A DNA stretch of 64,000 nucleotides from Dimorphilus gyrociliatus (Eukaryota > Animalia > Annelida): the NCBI GenBank assembly GCA_904063045.1, contig CAJFCJ010000039.1:67381-131380 (forward strand), written 5' to 3'. Position 1 is the first letter of the stretch. Every line of letters begins with the position of its first letter. Positions 33,473-46,339 of the stretch are shown one piece after another. A program made the position numbers and the translations under genes. Below the pieces are notes generated by a model. The model did not search any database. It saw only the letters and a list, made by a program, of their open reading frames with translations, and was not told where the DNA came from.

Positions 33473-34794
33473 CATATATATCAGAGAAGGATAGAAAGAT
33501 TGAGAGAGCTAAAACTAGAGGAGGAAAAAGAACAAGATAATGTATATAATGCAAATAGTAATATACAATATATACACCAATATAATGGCGCGTACTGATA
33601 TCAGATCTGAATGTTTAATTATTTTAAGATAAAACAATTTGAGCGATGATTAAGAGAGTAAGATAGTAAAAATTGGTCGTACATAGCAAAAAGTCATCTG
33701 ATAAGAAAAGTAGTAAGAAGGAGAAGGATAAAAGGAATTGCTTATGCAATTTTCTCATATAGAATCATCATTTTTCCGCAAATTTCAAAGATATTTAGGA
33801 AGAAATGATGGTTAGATGTTTATTTATTCGATTGATTTTTAAGTTGTCTATTATTAATCAAAGTCGCTAAGAACAAAACATCAAATGCAATGGATACTTG
33901 GTCACGCATACGATTATTCTCTTATTTCTTTTATCCTTACTTAAACGCTTGCTTAAACGATGTTGAGGAGAGAAGGAAGAGGAGGCAAAAGAGCTTTTAT
34001 TGAGACAAAGGTAATTATATTAATATATATTTTTCTATTGTACGTGTCCGATATATATATATATTAGTAACTTTATCAATATTCATGTGAGTTTTATATA
34101 TCTATATCAAGTTGTCGAGCTACATGTATTGCATTTTCGTACGGTGCACAGTATATGTTAGGAGTAGTTTTTTTTTAAGACCACGGCACATGCTGTGGCG
34201 GCAGTGGCCTCGTATCTTTCGAGTAAATCGATTAAAGAGAAAAGATAAGTGTTGTTGTTCTGTCAACAGTCTATCACTTCTATTCAGAATATAGAAATAT
34301 TGCCCAAGGCCTTTTTATTATTCCATTAACAATTAAGATATTTCGCCATTGGGGCCCTAAAATTTTTCTAATGCGTATCTTACTAGGAGGGTTATAGCGG
34401 GAATCGAGAGAAAGAGGGAAGGGGTAAGGGAGAAAGAGGGACGGAGGGATAGAGAGGAAGAGAGAAAGAGAGAAAGAGAGAAAGAGAGAAAGAAAGAGAA
34501 ATGAAAGAGACGGAAGGAGGAGTAGTCAAATAACAATACGAGAAAGGGGCTTATTCTTAAATTGAAATGGAGAGAATAGGGTAAAAATAAACGTTTATAT
34601 TCTCTTTAGTCAAATGAGCCAAAAAAAAGCCAATTAACTTAGTTCAATTCAATTCAAATGTTCGTTCTGTTATCTAAATTGGACTATCTGAATAAAAGAG
34701 AAAAAAAATTGACCCAAATTTCGTACAATATAAAAAAAGAGACTTGGAAATATACATATAATATACGTATATATATATATAAGAATACATATAC

Positions 34795-34827
<33 letters not shown>

Positions 34828-35025
34828 ACAAATAAGGAAAAAAGGTTATTTTGTTATATAAATCTCAATTTTTTTTAATTTTGTTATATGTTTTTTTTTT
34901 AAAAAAAAAATAGAAAAAAAATTTACTTGAGCACTTTTTCGAACTATTCAATATTTTTATGTATTTTTTTTCTTTTTGTTATTTCTATTATTCTCTTATA
35001 TTCTTTTGTTGAAAAAAAATATTTA

Positions 35026-35039
35026 TCGCCATCTGGCGC
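35026..35039 (-). promoter_or_regulatory. CTCF-like motif
   Basis: GCGCCAGATGGCGA on (-). Confidence 0.5.
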
Positions 35040-35980
35040 CTGAATTTTTCATTCGTCATAATCTCAAATAAAATTCTCTAAATAAACATTTTGAACTGGA
35101 GTGCTTGTCAATATTATATTGATACTAACCGATTGCCTTTCAATTTAACTACAACAACAAATTTGATTGAATAAACTTTAGCAAAGAGCCGTTCAATTGT
35201 TTTTTACCAACTCACTTTATTGGCAGCAGGTACGAACTCTTTTCAACATTATCTAAATTTTATTGATGGGTTTAGGAGAAGAGTGAAAGAGCGAATGAGA
35301 GAGAAAATATTTCATAAAAAAACAAAATAAAAAAACAAAATCATATAACGTTGGCCAGAACAAAAAATTTTACTAAGAGAGGAATGAGAATGCAGACAAT
35401 TTTTCTACCCTAAAAACCTAAACTTTAAGGATTCTATTTGTGCTGTGTAACCATCGATTGTGAAAAACCCAGAACACGATTTATCACTCTTCTTCTCAAC
35501 CAACTTGTTCGAAGAGGGAAAAAGACATAAACAAAAATAGAATAAAACAATAACAAATCGAAAAAGGAGGATTTTTAGAGAAGAAGAAGAAGGATAAAAG
35601 AATAGAAGGAAAAGCAAGGAAAGCGAACAAAAAAATAACAAAATAAATAAAAAAAAAAACACCAACAAATTCTCTTGTCTTACTATAAAGATCTATGACT
35701 TTTTTCACCCTAATCTCTTCTCTCTATCAAATCATCTAATGTGAAATGAAAATTGCTGAGAAGGTAAAAAAAATAACTATTTTCTTTTTTCCTGTCCCGA
35801 ATCTATTGTTCATACAGTAAGGTTCGCAATAGTAGCTTTTCAATATTCGATACGCGGCCGCTTTACACAATTCATTTCATTTTAGGTTATACGAAAGAAT
35901 GTTCTTTAAAGGAATTCTTTTTTTTTCTTTCTTTCTTTCGTGCTCTATTCTTTCTTCGGCCTTGCACAGGACAGGGCTTC

Positions 35981-36017
<37 letters not shown>

Positions 36018-36574
36018 TAGAAAGAAAGGGAGAAAGGGAGAGAAAGAGAGAGAGGGGGAGGGAGGGAGGGAAAGAGAGAAAGAGAGAGAAAAATATAGGG
36101 AAGGGAAGAGAAAAAGTAGTCTTTTTCGTGGAAAATTTGTTCAACTTTGTAATGCAAAAAATAGCGGTTACGTAGGACGTGCCATTTATAGTTTTACCTA
36201 CTCTGAATATAGCTTTAGGCATTAGCCATATATGGTTTGTGACTGTGTTTTTTGTATGTTATTTCTCCTTTATTCTCCCTCCCACCACCTCTGTCTTTTT
36301 TTTTCTTGGCTATTTTATACTTGGTCTTACTTGTTGCAATGAATTGACAATGAATAAGGAATTAATTAAGTAATCAATAGCGACAATTAAATTACTCTGT
36401 AAAGAAAGTGCTCGTCGCAAATTTCATCTCTCCTCGAAATCTGCGAAATCTAAAGGGAAATTACGAATAAAATGATAAGTGTAGACCTTTAAATTTAACA
36501 TTTCTTTTTTAGTATTCGCCTACGCTTATTGAATAGTACAATATCTATTTATCATTATTATTATTACTATTATA

Positions 36575-36609
<35 letters not shown>

Positions 36610-36677
36610 TATATACAATTATACGCTAGCTGTATATACTACAATTTCTTAACAAGATTATTATTAGTTTCCTCCCG

Positions 36678-36691
36678 GCGCCATCTACGGG
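36678..36691 (-). promoter_or_regulatory. CTCF-like motif
   Basis: CCCGTAGATGGCGC on (-), one mismatch to consensus. Confidence 0.55.
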
Positions 36692-37017
36692 CCAATAAAT
36701 GCGTAAATAATACTGCATATTTTTCCAGACTGTATGTACACGTCTTATTTACCTTTACTGAAAAGATTAATAACGTTTGTTAAAGGTGCGTTTTTTGAAT
36801 GCTTAGACAGAAATCCATGGCTTAAATGAAAGTTAATTTAAATATCCTCTTTTTTATCTTATCTTTAATCAAAGATTGCTTCTAAAACCATGAAAAAGCA
36901 TACGAGTAAATAAGCGGTCTAGTAAAATAATACTTTATTAATGATGTTAGTTCGTTAGTGTTAATTTGCAGTGACCCAAATATTGTACTGCGGCAGAGTG
37001 CACTTGATAAAGTTGAC

Positions 37018-37119
37018 ATGACCCACATACAGTATATCAATTCATATGCAAATAATTCGCAACAGATGAATAGATTAAAAATGCATAAGGGATGTCAAAG
37101 AGTAACATATTCCGGCAAG
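37018..37119 (+). CDS. PTBP1: Candidate distal alternative first coding exon of PTB
   Basis: Exon 36972-37119 has a ttgcag acceptor and AAG|gtaaac donor and is open throughout. ATG 37018 gives MTHIQYINSYANNSQQMNRLKMHKGCQRVTYSGK in phase 0, joining RTAEQ of the common exon. Confidence 0.4.
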
Positions 37120-37832
37120 GTAAACATTTAACAACTGGGCTTTAAAAAGCAATTAGTTGGAATTAAGTGAGGTAGAAGAGTTAGACAGAGAGGAAGGAGA
37201 CTACTACTCTTGAACAAGTTTGTTGTAGCAGTCAGCTAGCTAGCTAGCTCTTTTTCTCCTTACATACATGGTAAAATATATATATATATATATACTATAC
37301 TCTGTATATATAGTATAGTATATATGTATATATCCCTTTTCCTCCCTCTCTCTCTATCGCAGTCTATTCGTGTTTTAACCGCTCACAGACTCTCTTTGTC
37401 TTTCACCCTTTACCTTTTATAACCCTACCCCCTTCCCCCTACACCAAACACATCAAACGCCGTCCGCACTCAGCAACAGTTTCATACCAGAAATTGATTT
37501 ATTATCGAATTATAGGAAATTGGATACAATACAACTGTAATAACTCGACTCTAGGCCCAGTTATTCTAAAAAATTTTCCGTTTTCGCTCGGTTTTATGAA
37601 GGCGCCGGCCGTTTTAAGTATATCTGAGTTCGTATCGCCGAAATAAAAGCGGAATTGTGCCAGCTGTGACTAACGCTTGATCGATGTTTGGCCGGCAGCA
37701 TTTTGTAGTATTGCGGTTTATGTGAGGTATGTTTATGAATATAATTTTCAATTTGAAAAAAATTATCACAATCCCAAAGAGTAGATTCCCTTTCAAAGTC
37801 ACGAACGATCGTGATAGGACGGTCAGATTTCT

Positions 37833-37873
37833 TTCCTAGGTGGCGCGCGCTGTTCGTCGTCGCCAGATGTCGC
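37833..37873 (+). promoter_or_regulatory. GC-rich PTB proximal promoter with two CTCF-like motifs
   Basis: TTCCTAGGTGGCGC (37833-37846) and TCGCCAGATGTCGC (37860-37873) in a CpG-rich island about 150-190 nt upstream of ATG 38020. Confidence 0.5.
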
Positions 37874-38019
37874 GCGGCGTCGTTGACAGCGCAATAGAAT
37901 ATTGAATGGCGGCGGGAACAGTGCACTGATCACTGATCCGTATCCTCTCTCTCTCTCTCTCTCTGTTCTTTTCTGTCAACGCAAAACGATTCTACTCTTA
38001 ATTTTCTCTACGTAAAACA

Positions 38020-39708
38020 ATGTTAGCTGTGGACGCGGCGACAGGAGGACTAGTCGTAATCCCGGCAAATACCGCCCCAACTTCCGCCGCTCTTCCTCCG
38101 TCCAACGCCCTTTTTCTGACGCCGCAGTCGACCATTGGCTTACAGAACGTTTCTTTAAAGGTATGCTGTTTGTTCTAGTTAAATAGAGGAGCGCCTAACT
38201 ACCTTTTTATGCGTATTGGGAATTTTGCAATATTGTTTGGTGCACCTGTTCTATAGGGAGCGCACCTCTCTCTCTCTCTTTCTCTCTTACTCTTTCGCTG
38301 TGTCTCTCTCGATCTCTCTCTCTCAATCTCTCTCAATCTCAATCTCTCGATCTCTCTCAATACGATAGTTTGGTTCAGAAAATTGACGGCCTAAATTGTA
38401 ATATTTGCGATTAGGAGAGTAAACAGTTGGTCTTACCTCGTACTACCATTGTATAGGTATGATTGAACATAGGAATGCAAAGGTGATATGATTGCTTTTA
38501 TTGGATAGGAATAGAACGAAAACGAGCACCAGTAAATAAGTGTAGAGAGCATTTTAGATATATCTATAAATATATGTATTAATAAAAGAGTTAGATTTAT
38601 CTCATTCACATATATATATATATACTGTATATATAAAATATGAATACGTAGCTCGATAAAGGAATGTATATATATTTGAATGAGAGAGAGAGAGAGAAAA
38701 AATTGTAGATAACAATTACTAGGACCAGATAGAAATTGACACTAATAAAACGTGAACGATTATTTGAATAAAATGTCGCTTATATTCTCCTAGCCTGTGC
38801 ATTTGTTTAATTTCTGCATTTTAACGATAATGGGCGCGTATTTGTCTACCTTTTCAACTATTACAAAAGGTTTGCAAGATGGCTAGAACATGATGCAAAT
38901 ATTTATGTAATTCTAATCAATTAAAATACGAGCCAAGTTTTTTTTTTCACGTAATCCTCTCGCTCTCTCTATCTATCTATTTATCTATTGCTCTCATTCT
39001 CCCTTATATTATATAAGCATATATATAAAAAATATATATATATGCATATATCGCTCTATTCCCTTATCTTACTAAGTCTTATTGTACCTCCTACCCTCTA
39101 TATTTCTTTTCTCATTCCTCCTTTTTCCCATTTCAAACAGCGCACCGCCGAACAGCAACAACCGCAACAACTGTCTTCTGCGGAGGAGAGTCAAGACGCG
39201 AAGAAAGTCAAATTAGATCTAACTCCTTCTGAACAGAGCCAACCGTCAAGAGTGGTACACTTCCGTTCGGTTCCGGCAGACGCTACGGAGCTCGATATTG
39301 TCCAACTAGGCATTCCGTTTGGTCGTATGACCAATTTGGTATTAGCAAAGAAGAAGAATCAAGCCTTACTAGAAATGGACGAAGTACAAAGTGCCCAAGC
39401 ACTGTTGGAGTATTACTCTGAAAGACAGCCTACGGTTAGAGGACGTCCCGTTTACGTTCAATATTCCAATCATCAGCATTTGAAGACGGAACAGGAGGGC
39501 CAAAGTCCCGAAGCCGTTTCTCCGGTTACCAGTCAAGCGGACGACAGAACCGTATTGCGAGTGATTGTCGATAATATGCTTTATCCAGTATCCATTGACG
39601 TACTCAAGCAGATATTTTCCCGTTATGGAGCCGTTTTGAAAATTGTCACGTTTAGCAAAAATAGTAAGTTTTAATTTAATTGATATTTTATTTTCTTATC
39701 CCTTCGCC

Positions 39709-39750
<42 letters not shown>

Positions 39751-42700
39751 ATGTGTTTTTTTTCCATCTTTTCTATCCCGCAGTAAATTTGACTATCATA
39801 GTCATGCCGGTTTGTATAACTAGAATTAAATTTAAAATCGATTTTTCAAACGCATACCGTAGTCTTAATCATTTATTATTCATACGTCATGAAACAAAAA
39901 TTTGAATAGAGTATTTTTCTTCTTCTTCTTTCCCTATTTTTTTCATTATCTATTAATTGTTTATCGTTTTTTTTTTCTTCTCTCTCCTTTAACAGATTTT
40001 CCAGATCAACTGCAAGCTCTTATTCAAATGTCCGAACCAATGGCTGCCCAAACAGCCAAATTTAGCTTGAATGGTCAAAATATCTACGGAGGCTGCTGTA
40101 CCCTTCGGATCGACTTTTCTAAGCTGACATCGCTGAATGTCAAGTACAATAATGACAAGTCGCGGGACTATACAAATCCGACTTTACCGTCTGGAGATTC
40201 GACATCGGGAGCGTTGACCATTGATCAAATAGGATCTCCCTACCGAACAAACCCAGCAGCACCAGGTCCGTAACCTTTTATTAAGAGTGTCTAAAATTTG
40301 ATAGATAACTGTCTAGAGATTGGTTTTGAATAATTAGGAGCTACAACATTCATTTCACCCTTCGCACCTTCGCCAGGTAAAGTGGTGAATTAAAACTCAG
40401 TCACCTTGAACTATCTATCAATTTTATCTGCATGGCCCGTTTTAAAAAAACCACAATGTTTTTATTAGATGACCTATTACTACTATTAATTACTAATTAC
40501 GACGAACCGTCTCTTTACTTTTATTTCAACGAAATTCTCCGTTTCTAATAGCATAAGCTTTCTTCCTTTCTTTCGAATTCTTTTTCCACTACTATAATTA
40601 TTATTCATATTCGTAAATCACTGTTTTTTTCCTCTCGCCCCATTATAACAAAAGAGAGTGAAAAAATAAAGTCGGATTAAACGTTCAATCACAAAAAAAA
40701 CATACTTTCCGTCTTCAGCTTTTTTTCTAAAGTCTTTATATTCTCTTCGTTCTACTTTTAGTTTTATTTCCTATTCGATTATTCGTTAGTTTTATTTCTT
40801 TTTGTTTTGTTGTCGCTTGTAAAAACTTGCTAAAAAGCAAGAAAACATCAAGAAATCAACTTTCATCTCTCTTCCTTGTTTCGTTCTTCTTAGATATTCG
40901 GCTGCTTCGTCCTCCTCTGTTTTTCTCTTCTTCTTAATTTCCTTTTCAAGTCAAAAAAAAATGACAATAAAATAAAATACTTCCAGTTATTGGTCACATG
41001 ACTGCTTTTTGTTAAAACACGTATTAGAATTTGGTAACAGAAGCCGTTTAGCGTTTAAACACAATAAAAAGAGTCACGTGACTAGAAACAGAAAAACAAT
41101 TTATCTAATCTGTTCATCTCATCTTATGAACTTAAATGATATCTTTACAGTCAGGGTAACTTTTATATTAATGTGATATTTTTTTTTACTCTTTATAAAC
41201 AGCTATACCGTTTATAGGACCTTCGAGTGTACCTGGATTGAATCTACCTGGAACAACACTACGATTCCCGTCAATAAGTTCGTCTCCCGCAATCAATTCA
41301 GTTGTGCTGGTATCGAATCTGAATGAAGAAGTGAGTTAATAAAAATTTTTTCCTTATTTTTATGTTTGAAACAAAAACCAAAAAAAAACAATGAAAAACC
41401 AAAATGGCTGCATTATTCAAAAACTCTATTTTTTTTGCACTTTTTCTCAATTCTTTCAATGACAAAAAATAGAAAGGTTGTATAAGTAGGGAGGCGCTTT
41501 TTTCTGAACGTTTGACTATTTAAATATTTACGTTTATGTTAACTAAACTAAACTGGGAAAGAAAAAAAAAGTGCCGCTCTTTTTATACAATTAAAAAAAA
41601 TTATTCGATTTTTGCTGACACATTCGTGTTTTTTTCTCCTCTGCCTTGTTCCGCCGCTCCTACTCCTACTCCTCCTGATCGCTACTCATCAACGAACTAA
41701 AATTCTGCGCATTCTCATTCTAGACGGTCACGCCCGATGCTCTCTTTACCCTGTTTGGTACGTTCTCTATTCATTTTTTTTTTTTGCCGTGCATATAAAC
41801 TATATACTACTATACATTCGCCATAAAATATGCAACGGCGTCGCTCTAAACGCCTGAATGCACGCTTTTTGAATATCATAGAATTATTAATATTGCTTTA
41901 CAATAGGCGTCTACGGCGATGTGATCCGCGTTAAAGTACTCTTCAACAAGAAGGACAATGCCCTTGTCCAATACAACGACCCGTCCGGCGCCCAATTCGC
42001 CATACAGCATCTTAACAACATCCGCGTGTGGGGCAAGCCGTTGAAAGTAACCCAATCCAAGCACGCCGTTGTACAGATGCCTAGGGAAGGACAGCAGGAC
42101 GCTCAGCTGACAAAGGACTACACTTCGTCGTCTCTCCACCGCTTTAAAAAGCCTAACTCGAAGAATCATCACAACATTTATCCTCCGTCTGCCACGCTTC
42201 ATCTATCTAACATTCCACCGAATGTCGGAGAACAAACCCTAAGAGATCTGTTTGGCGAATTCGGAACGATAGTCAACTTTAAATTCTTTAGGTAAGTACA
42301 CTATCTTTTTGCCATTCTTCCCCTCGTCCCTTCTCTTCACCATATAAACCATATCTCTTCCCTCTATTTATACGAGGGTGGGCGACTGGTAAGAAATGAG
42401 AGCGAGAGAGGAAAGGGGAAGAGAATAGTTTTACACACTCTGTATGCCGTAATTAAAGCCAGGTTTCCATTAATTATCAATATACTCTCTTCTCTGACCA
42501 GAGAAGTAAAAATAGGTCTACATCAATATTTAATCATTCTCGATTAGTATCTGACACACAGTAAACAAATAAGTCATAAAACTACACACCCCGCTTTTCC
42601 TGCGTCACACGCTTGCACGCTCAACATCTATTTGATTATTGATACGTTGAAAGAGAATATCTATCTATATCTTTTTTAGCCGATAGACAATTGGCTTAAC

Positions 42701-43632
42701 ACAGACAAGTAGGCCTTGATGACTTATTTTTGAGTATTTAAGTTATTTCAATAGTAGTATTAGAGAGTGAGCTAACATGAATATTCCCTGTGCCTAAGAA
42801 CGAAAGAGAAGCGGTAAAGAATGAAGGGAATTTTTTATTGTGCCTATGTGTGTGCAAGAGTTGAGTGAGTATAGAGAGAAAATTATACATGCGACAGTGT
42901 TTTCGTGTCCCTACTCGTCTCTGGCTTGCGCAAACAGACTGTGTAAACAATTCGAACGGCGGCCTGTTTACCGTCGCTTTATTTGCAGCGCCGATCGGGA
43001 CCGAAAAGATCGCAAGATGGCTCTCATGCAGATGGACGGTGTCGAGGAGGCCGTACACGCTTTAATCGTAAGTTGTCAACTTAGTTTCTCCGGTATCAAT
43101 CGAAAAAAAGACAAAAATCAAAAACACATAAAATGATAAAAGGACCAAGAAAGAGAGAGAAAGAAAGAAAGAAAAATATGCTTTTCTTCTATATTTTATT
43201 TATCCAAATATTTCCCTTTCTCCCCTATATTATCTTTTTCATCCCTTTTGTCTCATTTAACCTTAGTTATCCATATTACACATAGCCTTCTTTCACTCTT
43301 TCAAACGCAATTACTATGATATTTATAAGGACTTTTACCACTTTGAGAAACATTTTGAAAGATTCATATACATTTATATATTTATATTTAAAGCGCCTTG
43401 TACACACAATCTAAATACCTAAATAATGTTTACAAACATGCAAACATACATTTGGCCATTATAGATATCTACTGTTTAATGATTAGTCTAAAAAAATATG
43501 CTTAGTCAAGTAAAAACATGGAGAAATTTCATACGCAACACGTTAATACGTATTCTATGAAAAGTACGTCTGCACAATTCTTATGCATAGTAAATGTGTA
43601 TGTTTAAATAATGTACATGCACATACACACAC

Positions 43633-43669
<37 letters not shown>

Positions 43670-43979
43670 ATATACTGTATATTTACGCACACACACACAC
43701 ACACATACACAGACAGACATACATACATGCATACATACATACAATACATGCATACACTTTTATATCGACCGGGCTTTGCATTCATGCAGTGTCGCCCTTT
43801 ATTATTTCCTTCATCAATTATTCATTAGCCTTTTCCGCGGTATTATCACGTGACCGTAACGCGTCCTTCTCTCCTTGTTTTTTTTTTTCCCCATTTTATA
43901 CCGTTTACAGGGTTTGCACAATTACGAGTTGATGGCCGGCTCGCACCTACGAGTCTCCTTCACCAAATCCGTCATTTGA
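38020..43979 (+). CDS. PTBP1: Polypyrimidine tract-binding protein (PTBP/hephaestus), four RRMs, about 552 aa with terminal exon A
   Basis: Exons 38020-38160, 39141-39663, 40005-40265 (alternative acceptor 39996), 40338-40376, 41203-41330, 41724-41757, 41907-42291, 42989-43067 and 43911-43979 sum to 1659 nt in frame. Diagnostic segments: [118 protein letters not shown]. Confidence 0.95.
41724..41757 (+). CDS. PTBP1: 34-nt PTB exon equivalent to vertebrate PTBP1 exon 11 / PTBP2 exon 10
   Basis: tctag|ACGGTCACGCCCGATGCTCTCTTTACCCTGTTTG|gtacgt encodes [11 protein letters not shown](G), with the same size and phases as the vertebrate NMD-switch exon. Confidence 0.9.
43620..43750. repeat. Compound (AT)n(AC)n(ACAT)n microsatellite in PTB last intron
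   Basis: Direct reading. Confidence 0.9.
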
Positions 43980-44586
43980 GGACGGATATTTAAAAATTCC
44001 TCCCCTTCCCCACAGGTTTCTTAGTTTTTGTTTTGGCTACAAATTTATCAATTTGATAAGATGATACAAAAATTTTTTGCATGCTGGAGATTTCAACGCA
44101 TGGGAGATTAATTCCTTATAATTATTAATGTTTTATTTTTTTATTATCATCATTACTCTATTCTAAATGATATTGTGCTATCTTTCGCCTCTCTATTATA
44201 ACCTATACAGTATGTATATACAGTATATATTGAAGCGTATATGAATTATGTGCGATATATGGAAGTTTTATGAAGCAATTTAGACAAAGAGACATATATT
44301 GTACGTCATTAAATACGAACATATATATGCTGAATATATATATTTATATATATATTTATCTTTTTGTACTGAGTGCACGTCTAAAAAAGTGGTGATCGAC
44401 TATTGAATCGGGCTTATATTGATCTCTATTGAAACGCATCTGCGATGAGAGGCTGTTCTTCATTAGCAGTTAGACGACATATATATGAAAAGAAAAAATT
44501 AAAAAAAAAATTGCTATTGAATCGATTCGCAGATGGTACACAGTCGTATTGAACATTAGCTAATCCTCCTTTTCTATTCCTCACAG

Positions 44587-44727
44587 AATTTGCATAATCA
44601 TCAACTAGCCGAAGCTGCCCATCTCCGGGTGTCCTTTTCTAAATCTTACGTTGTACCCCAATCACAAGCTTTGGCCAATGGTGAAGAGGGGGAAGAAAGA
44701 GTTTTAGATGAAAACGAGGAAGATTGA
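44587..44727 (+). CDS. PTBP1: Duplicated alternative terminal exon B of PTB (end of RRM4 plus acidic tail); isoform about 576 aa
   Basis: Branch-like CTAAT, pyrimidine tract and tcacag acceptor, phase 0: NLHNHQLAEAAHLRVSFSKSYVVPQSQALANGEEGEERVLDENEED*. Paralogous to exon [23 protein letters not shown]. Confidence 0.85.
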   Translation, partial: NLHNHQLAEAAHLRVSFSKSYVVPQSQALANGEEGEERVLDENEED

Positions 44728-44823
44728 AACGTTTAATCTACTCTAATGCTGATAATTAACAATAACAATAATAACAATATTATTTACTAATAATGATGAT
44801 GATGTTCGGCATCCGACGCTGCT

Positions 44824-44903
44824 ATATATATATATATATATATATATACTAAGGAGTTGTTAGTAAAAGTGTATATATATATATACGAACGCAATATATG
44901 CCG

Positions 44904-44950
<47 letters not shown>

Positions 44951-45118
44951 GTATATATATATATATACGTGTGTGTATGTGTGTGTATATGTATACGGTA
45001 TATATATCTTATGCAAAACGAAATTCTCAGTTTCAGTTTTCTCTTATATTTTTTTTTATGTATATATATATACATATATTTATATATTTATATATATATA
45101 TATATATATATGTATATA
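44824..45118. repeat. Long interrupted (AT)n/(GT)n microsatellite block
   Basis: Direct reading; the source of several spurious Y/I-rich ORFs. Confidence 0.9.
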
Positions 45119-46255
45119 GATTATTGAGAATATTCTTTATCGCGTGCCTTAAAAAGAACAGTCCGTGCGCTTATTTTGCGCATGCGCAATATGTGATAAT
45201 GTTGTAGAATATTTTTTTGAAACATTCCAGAAATACGTTAGAAAGAAAGAAAAGAGGAGAGAAAAGAAATATGTATTTCTGTTTTGGTTTATTTTTTTGT
45301 CTTTGTTGTGAATATATTTTGATTGTGGGGAGGACAGCCTTTTTTTTATATCCGGGATTGCATGATAAAACAAAAAACAAACTATAGAAAGCGAAAAGAG
45401 AATAACAAACAGAGAGAAAAACAAAAAATAGAGAAAAAGTACTTTTTTCAAGCTCCATTGAATGTTAGGAGAAAATCAATTGTACTATAGATTATCGAGT
45501 GGAACGTTTTCAAAGTTCGTGCTCTGCAAATTTTATTAAACATAAATGATCATAAATTCGACATGCATTCCCAATCATTTATGGATAGGGATGCATTCAA
45601 TTTTTTCTTCTTATTCTATTTTTAACTTATGCACGATAGTCATGCATCAAATATTCCGTTACAGATTTAATGAAAAAAACACTGCAACAATTGTTCATGC
45701 ACCCGAATATAAGGCCTAACTCTTCATTTCTATAACATATTTTTCGTATATACCAATATATTAAATGTTTATGGTGCCTTTTCATATATATATATATGCT
45801 GTTTAAGGTATATATTTATATATAGCTTATATATAAATGTATATTCATATACATATGTATACAACTTGTAGATACATCTATATGAATATTCAATATATTT
45901 ATATGTATGTATATTTAAATATATACATTTTTAGAGGTCTGATCGTGCCTGCTGTACCCGGGATCAATGCGAGTGTAATAGTTTTTAATTATATAAAACG
46001 ATAAGAGAAAATATTTTACGTTGTCAATACCTGTGAATAATTCAATTGGCAATACAGTGTACAAACGGGACGGAAACTGTTCATCGATCGTTTTTTCACC
46101 GCAAAACGTGCGATTGTCAAGCGGCGCGTAGTGATGACAAACATTTCGGATCGTTCAATAAACGAAAAGCCGATTGACTGTTTATACACGTATGTACACG
46201 TACATATGCATGTACGTATAAACATATACAGTGTCCGTACAGCAATAAGATCTAT

Positions 46256-46285
46256 ATACAGTATATATATATATATACTGTATAC

Positions 46286-46339
<54 letters not shown>

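Follow-up and report, generated by a model that had tools for sequence, protein, structure and literature searches.

Two acceptors at a probably ancient tandem duplication set the C-terminus of PTB in Dimorphilus gyrociliatus

The 3′ end of the gene for polypyrimidine tract-binding protein (PTB) in D. gyrociliatus probably derives from an ancient tandem duplication, with the donor at 43067 being joined to the acceptor of either of two homologous exons, here termed A and B, and thereby setting the C-terminus of the protein (we assign this reading a probability of roughly 0.75). The C-terminus depends on acceptor choice alone, and both mRNA forms have the same 3′ end. All positions refer to the window, i.e., the entire stretch of 64,000 nucleotides that was analyzed.

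PTB is encoded by a single gene in D. gyrociliatus. Its RRM3-4 exon matched the RRM3-4 structures of PTBP1 and PTBP2 in the PDB with E values of 6e-50 to 1e-47, and the exons in the window matched the Pfam families RRM_5, RRM_8, and RRM_1, to which full-length relatives added RRM_occluded. The gene has the four PTB-type RRMs and the RRM3-RRM4 didomain that mark members of the PTB family. The following exons precede the duplicated region:

39141-39663, plus strand: PTB coding exon with RRM1 and the start of RRM2 (translation, splice sites, Pfam RRM_8 and RRM_1; 99% identity to DgyrCDS14445)
39996-40265, plus strand: PTB coding exon with the rest of RRM2 (translation, DgyrCDS14445; weak Pfam RRM_5 match, under the curated cutoff)
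41724-41757, plus strand: 34-nt exon corresponding to exon 11 of human PTBP1 (AG/GT flanks, RNA contigs)
41907-42291, plus strand: PTB coding exon with the end of RRM3, the linker, and the start of RRM4 (PDB PTBP1 RRM3-4, E value 6e-50)
42989-43067, plus strand: penultimate coding exon with a phase-0 end (...AVHALI) and GT at 43068 (sequence, RNA contigs)

The public gene model DgyrCDS14445, whose locus (GCA_904063045.1, CAJFCJ010000039.1:101400-113675) is 100% identical to window positions 34020-46295 over 12,276 bases, is itself 98 to 100% identical to the exons in the window. However, it runs into the intron behind the RRM3-4 exon, terminates at ...NFKFFR (∼42292), and includes neither the penultimate exon nor A or B. 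The model consequently lacks the last 48 residues of the A isoform or the last 72 of the B isoform, and its RRM4 is incomplete; the exons described here correct it.

RNA evidence was taken from assembled contigs, not raw reads. Parts of the region 41880-44800 were contained in 24 runs, and four runs, each from a different study (X1, X2, X3, and X5), supplied the contigs that were aligned to 41850-44825. D. gyrociliatus PTB transcripts occurred in runs that were labeled as metagenomes of coral, marine, or invertebrate origin; presumably, the worm lived in those samples or aquaria. A coral origin of the window, which such labels suggested, was rejected in view of its 100% match to the D. gyrociliatus assembly. 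In all four aligned runs, the consensus of the loose contig ends matched 41727-41756 exactly, i.e., the 34-nt exon was included, and the joint 42291>42989 was present in contigs of X1, X3, and X5. One contig of X2 (42262-42864) extended from the RRM3-4 exon into the next intron at a depth of 28.8, compared with ∼1,090 for the exon. Its intron part was diverged and carried a 160-letter replacement, and it looks like a retained intron or pre-mRNA of a related lineage.

The first-pass annotation of this DNA had proposed two paralogous, acceptor-led exons behind the phase-0 donor at 43067. Inspection of the sequence confirmed both of them, and the duplicated region was resolved into the following features:

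43711-43910, plus strand: conserved intron flank before A, including a U-rich polypyrimidine tract and the acceptor (87.5% identity to the related-species contig L001)
43911-44015, plus strand: exon A, a 105-nt cassette exon (joints 43067>43911 in four runs and 44015>44587 in three runs)
44016-44586, plus strand: intron between A and B, 571 nt, with the weak donor GTTTCT (sequence, RNA contigs)
44587-44727, plus strand: coding part of exon B (joint 43067>44587 in four runs)
44728-44822, plus strand: start of the shared 3′UTR (contigs reach 44804-44822 and halt at simple repeats)

Behind its acceptor AG (43909-43910), exon A encodes 22 residues (43911-43976) followed by the stop codon TGA (43977-43979), and its noncoding part (43980-44015) terminates in a pyrimidine tract and CACAG (TTCCTCCCCTTCCCCACAG). 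Exon B, behind the acceptor AG at 44585-44586, encodes NLHNHQLAEAAHLRVSFSKSY and then an acidic tail ending in EEGEERVLDENEED before the stop codon TGA (44725-44727). The first 21 of its residues are homologous to A, and the tail comprises 25, one more than had been counted before. In the window, A and B had 12 of 21 residues and 35 of 63 bases in common. Codons for the shared residues mostly differed at the third position, which indicates that the duplication is old, and the 22-residue cores themselves showed only modest differences. The A isoform ends with ...SFTKSVI, its stop following the counterpart of human I557 and thus occupying the canonical position for PTB, whereas in the B isoform PTB ends with ...SFSKSY and continues into the acidic tail.

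Both exons were used, as had been anticipated: each of the four runs contained contigs with the joints 43067>43911 and 43067>44587, both with GT..AG borders. Contigs of X1, X2, and X3 additionally contained the joint 44015>44587 (GT at 44016, AG at 44585-44586), which the program listed as 44010>44582 ("cut +5"), with CACAG standing on either side. This third joint makes A a cassette exon that is spliced on to B, so that both mRNAs share B and the 3′ end. Mature mRNAs therefore do not carry strictly one copy or the other, as the joint unites A and B and two transcripts of other species (L006 and L022, see below) also contain both. From the depth of junction contigs, the share of A was ∼27 to 42%, a rough figure only, as abundance is not reliably measured by the depth of contigs. 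Runs X1 and X5 were nearly identical to the window, whereas X2 and X3 differed at ∼2.6% of exon bases, with all of the differences that were checked falling on third codon positions. The same three joints thus occurred in two genetically distinct lineages.

A contig of a related species (L001, from Logan), in which introns were 80 to 89% identical to the window where alignable, retained both exons. Exon A differed from the window by two synonymous changes and one Tyr-to-Lys exchange in its coding part and by a 2-nt deletion after the stop, which shortens the exon to 103 nt. Exon B (141 nt) differed by eight synonymous changes and one Glu-to-Asp exchange, indicating that, in this genus-level group, the acidic tail is under constraint. 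At the end of exon A, the final 20 nt (43996-44015), consisting of a CU-rich tract and CACAG, and the GT donor were unchanged in L001, whereas the 16 nt preceding 43996 showed several changes as well as the 2-nt deletion. The segment 43996-44015 may be a vestige of the old acceptor of B and may act as a splicing element as well. Contigs of low depth from runs X2 and X3 contained a piece of the flank before A (43757-43888). RNA pairing that might loop out A was sought as well, but the only candidates were TA-rich microsatellites (43637-43674 and 44322-44359; at most 92% complementary over 26 nt), which were not counted in view of their low complexity and their location in nonconserved parts of the introns.

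The duplicated pair was also found outside Dimorphilus. In the genome of Capitella teleta (L005), the penultimate exon (...AVHALM|gtaagt) is followed ∼1 kb downstream by an A copy of 22 residues and a stop; an all-pyrimidine spacer of 53 nt with ccag at its end comes next and then the annotated last exon (ALHNHQLAETSHLRVSYSKSTIAPS...). No GT was present in this spacer, so in Capitella a single last exon would offer two acceptors in tandem, one for A and one for B. Likewise, the JGI transcripts L006 (protein P0393) and L022 (P0273) contained A, a stop, a pyrimidine spacer of 45 to 50 nt, and a B-type segment in the 3′UTR, and in a genomic contig from a metagenome (L012) A and B lay 80 nt apart. 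In all four (Capitella, L006, L012, and L022) the intron between A and B was absent, and the copies were contiguous across a pyrimidine spacer of 45 to 75 nt, which is the acceptor tract of B itself. The full-length proteins P0392 to P0395 showed 72 to 74% identity among themselves and with Capitella (92% in the case of P0392 and Capitella), compared with 65% identity to Owenia and ∼62% to arthropods; judged by these values, their sources are probably annelids.

Across species, A copies shared 17 to 18 of 22 residues with each other and B copies 16 to 20 of 22, but A and B shared only 12 to 14 of 22, and dS was saturated beyond correction. A copies were hence as conserved as B copies, and together with the canonical position of the A stop this lent no support to the earlier view of A as the diverged copy. 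As A resembles A more than B, dS is saturated, and the order of the copies is constant, a single duplication preceding the split of Dimorphilus and Capitella would be the simplest reading. Both copies are, as far as can be judged from the comparison of their sequences, under constraint at the protein level.

Only a single copy was present at the leech locus (Helobdella, L008) and at the mollusc locus (Elysia, L009). Four metagenomic genomic contigs (L011, L016, L017, and L018) carried an A-like ending alone (22 residues and a stop), with no B within 0.7 to 5.8 kb downstream; here, B is either lost or located further away. Transcripts L007, L013, L019, and L020 had a similar 11-residue ending and no B segment in their 3′UTR. 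The T and V residues typical of A (see below) are thus not unique to the duplicated copy and may represent the older state in some spiralians.

Conservation in the introns was concentrated around the two exons. Besides the flank before A, the 100 nt after A (44016-44115) were 85% identical to L001 and the 200 nt before B (44387-44586) 89%, in contrast to ∼60% in the middle of the intron. Such conserved flanks are usual for regulated exons, and PTB genes autoregulate by splicing (PMC10342978). It might therefore be argued that A is a regulatory "poison" exon, which lowers PTB output via NMD or a longer 3′UTR, in the manner of exon 11 skipping in mammalian PTBP1, and whose peptide is irrelevant. 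This would agree with the early stop that A introduces, with an exon junction after it, and with the identity of its terminal CU-rich tract in L001. Under the vertebrate NMD rule, however, a premature stop lies more than 50 to 55 nt before the last exon junction, and the A stop precedes the A-B junction by 36 nt in the window and by 34 nt in L001, i.e., inside this limit, insofar as a vertebrate rule can be applied. In Capitella, L006, L012, and L022, no junction follows the stop at all. Moreover, the A peptide is conserved at 17 to 18 of 22 residues despite saturated synonymous sites, which is not the pattern of a peptide free of protein-level constraint, and it terminates exactly at the canonical PTB terminus. 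A junction contigs were abundant, and no clear enrichment of PTB-type motifs was detected around A (two per 100 nt, which is not convincing). We therefore regard a poison exon as unlikely. Given the short distance from stop to junction, the lack of any later junction in the tandem species, and the conserved peptide, the A and B mRNAs would both be productive.

Even less probable is the arrangement that had originally been suggested, in which A and B would serve as terminal exons that exclude each other, with a 3′UTR and a poly(A) site each. The hexamer ATTAAA, proposed as the poly(A) signal of A, does exist at 44308, one X3 contig continues from A into the downstream intron, and transcript L007 combines an A-like ending with a 3′UTR of its own and no B. 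In contrast, the joint 44015>44587, found in three of the four runs at depths like those of 43067>43911, splices A to B, so neither separate last exons nor an exchange of the 3′UTR was observed: the A mRNA carries B as 3′UTR. The X3 contig was low in depth (21.8 versus 165), ran past ATTAAA to 44483, and is more suggestive of unspliced RNA than of an alternative 3′ end. Among the contigs of the four runs, none ended at or near 44308, although a minor form is not provably absent from contigs, and the intron around this position was not conserved in L001 (∼60%). The motif thus stood but its use did not receive support; a minor polyadenylated form ending after A may exist. Finally, read-through of the A stop codon into a longer protein with both copies is barely credible: in the window, the length of A is divisible by three and its frame continues into B, as in L006, but the frame is broken in L001 and Capitella, the 12 codons behind the A stop are poorly conserved apart from the pyrimidine tract, and the 2-nt indel shows that this part of A is not read as protein.

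According to the preferred reading, i.e., an ancient tandem duplication with a choice between two acceptors, the duplication would have copied the acceptor of the last coding exon together with its initial ∼22 codons. Use of the acceptor at 44587 yields PTB with ...SFSKSY and the tail. Use of the acceptor at 43911 places the translation stop inside A; 44015 is then usually spliced to 44587, and B becomes 3′UTR. The 571-nt intron starts directly after the vestigial acceptor tract in exon A and ends in a second CACAG, which would fit a gain of this intron in the Dimorphilus lineage, at or beside the old acceptor of B. Dimorphilus thus has an intron just behind an old acceptor, and none was present there in the other species examined.

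As the first-pass annotation had recognized, each exon completes RRM4, and the choice between them swaps the last β-strand region together with the C-terminal tail. The swapped segment begins after the equivalent of human I535 and comprises the end of helix α2, the α2-β4 loop, strand β4, and the tail. In human PTBP1 RRM3-4, H538 and N539 are interface residues and F552 contacts the linker; within RRM4, S553 and K554 contact RNA and the terminal I557 bonds to one uridine (PMC10342978). Equivalents of H538, N539, F552, and K554 were present in both A and B. In A-type endings, human S553 is replaced by T and T556 by V, and the protein ends at the equivalent of I557; B-type endings keep S553 and run on beyond this point. 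P0393, an A-type protein, could be aligned with the solved human RRM4 up to its last residue. The predicted isoforms would consequently differ in the α2-β4 loop, in strand β4, and in the presence or absence of a C-terminal extension, and the most likely role of the switch is to tune how RRM4 binds RNA. A conserved natural swap within the RRM4 fold provides a ready-made pair for probing the role of strand β4 and the C-terminus in RNA choice.

A more far-reaching version of this reading is tentative and, on balance, doubtful. It would see an annelid-wide switch, several hundred million years old, that provides two PTBs whose RRM4 reads RNA differently, owing to S553T, T556V, another α2-β4 loop, and a free C-terminus versus an extension. 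PTB itself would bind the CU-rich tract between the copies, i.e., the acceptor tract of B, and the PTB level would set the ratio of isoforms and not PTB abundance.

Alternative splicing by tandem exon duplication and alternative splicing of PTB are both well known. Kondrashov and Koonin in 2001 and Letunic et al. in 2002 reportedly described how alternative splicing with mutually exclusive homologous exons arises from tandem exon duplication. A and B resemble such exons in being adjacent homologous copies of the same phase, both present in RNA, that supply alternative versions of one structural element. Unlike in mutually exclusive exons, however, the A mRNA holds both copies and exclusivity is reached at the protein level, through the stop in the upstream copy; in most species examined, moreover, the choice is between tandem acceptors within a single last exon. 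The locus is a clear case in which a duplicated acceptor and a few codons, with the upstream stop kept, provide a choice of C-termini with no need for a second poly(A) site.

PTB is among the best-studied splicing repressors, and its known isoforms alter linkers or abolish the protein. The mammalian PTBP1 isoforms PTB1, PTB2, and PTB4 arise from exon 9 and alternative 3′ splice sites (PMC10342978). As at the annelid locus, alternative acceptor use in a PTB gene yields protein isoforms, but PTB1, PTB2, and PTB4 differ in the RRM2-RRM3 linker, whereas the annelid switch replaces part of the RRM4 fold and the C-terminus. The NMD-coupled skipping of PTBP1 exon 11 or PTBP2 exon 10, by which these genes autoregulate, concerns the same gene family, and the 34-nt counterpart exon is present in Dimorphilus. 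This skipping destroys the reading frame, while the A and B products are both predicted to be complete four-RRM proteins; also unlike the PTBP1 exon 11 event, the A stop is either too near the last junction or not followed by any junction. In agreement with the first-pass annotation, which knew of no such arrangement in PTB, a limited literature search turned up neither alternative endings for RRM4 of PTB nor isoforms of annelid PTB.

The tails of B varied considerably between species. The 25 acidic residues in Dimorphilus correspond to a Gln-rich tail of ∼31 residues in Capitella, an Ala- and Gln-rich one of ∼58 in L006, and 4 to 12 residues elsewhere, none of these tails being acidic. The acidic tail is therefore specific to Dimorphilus and received no support as the general point of the switch, and autoinhibition by it, which had been put forward as one example of how RNA affinity could be tuned, could at most be a local feature.
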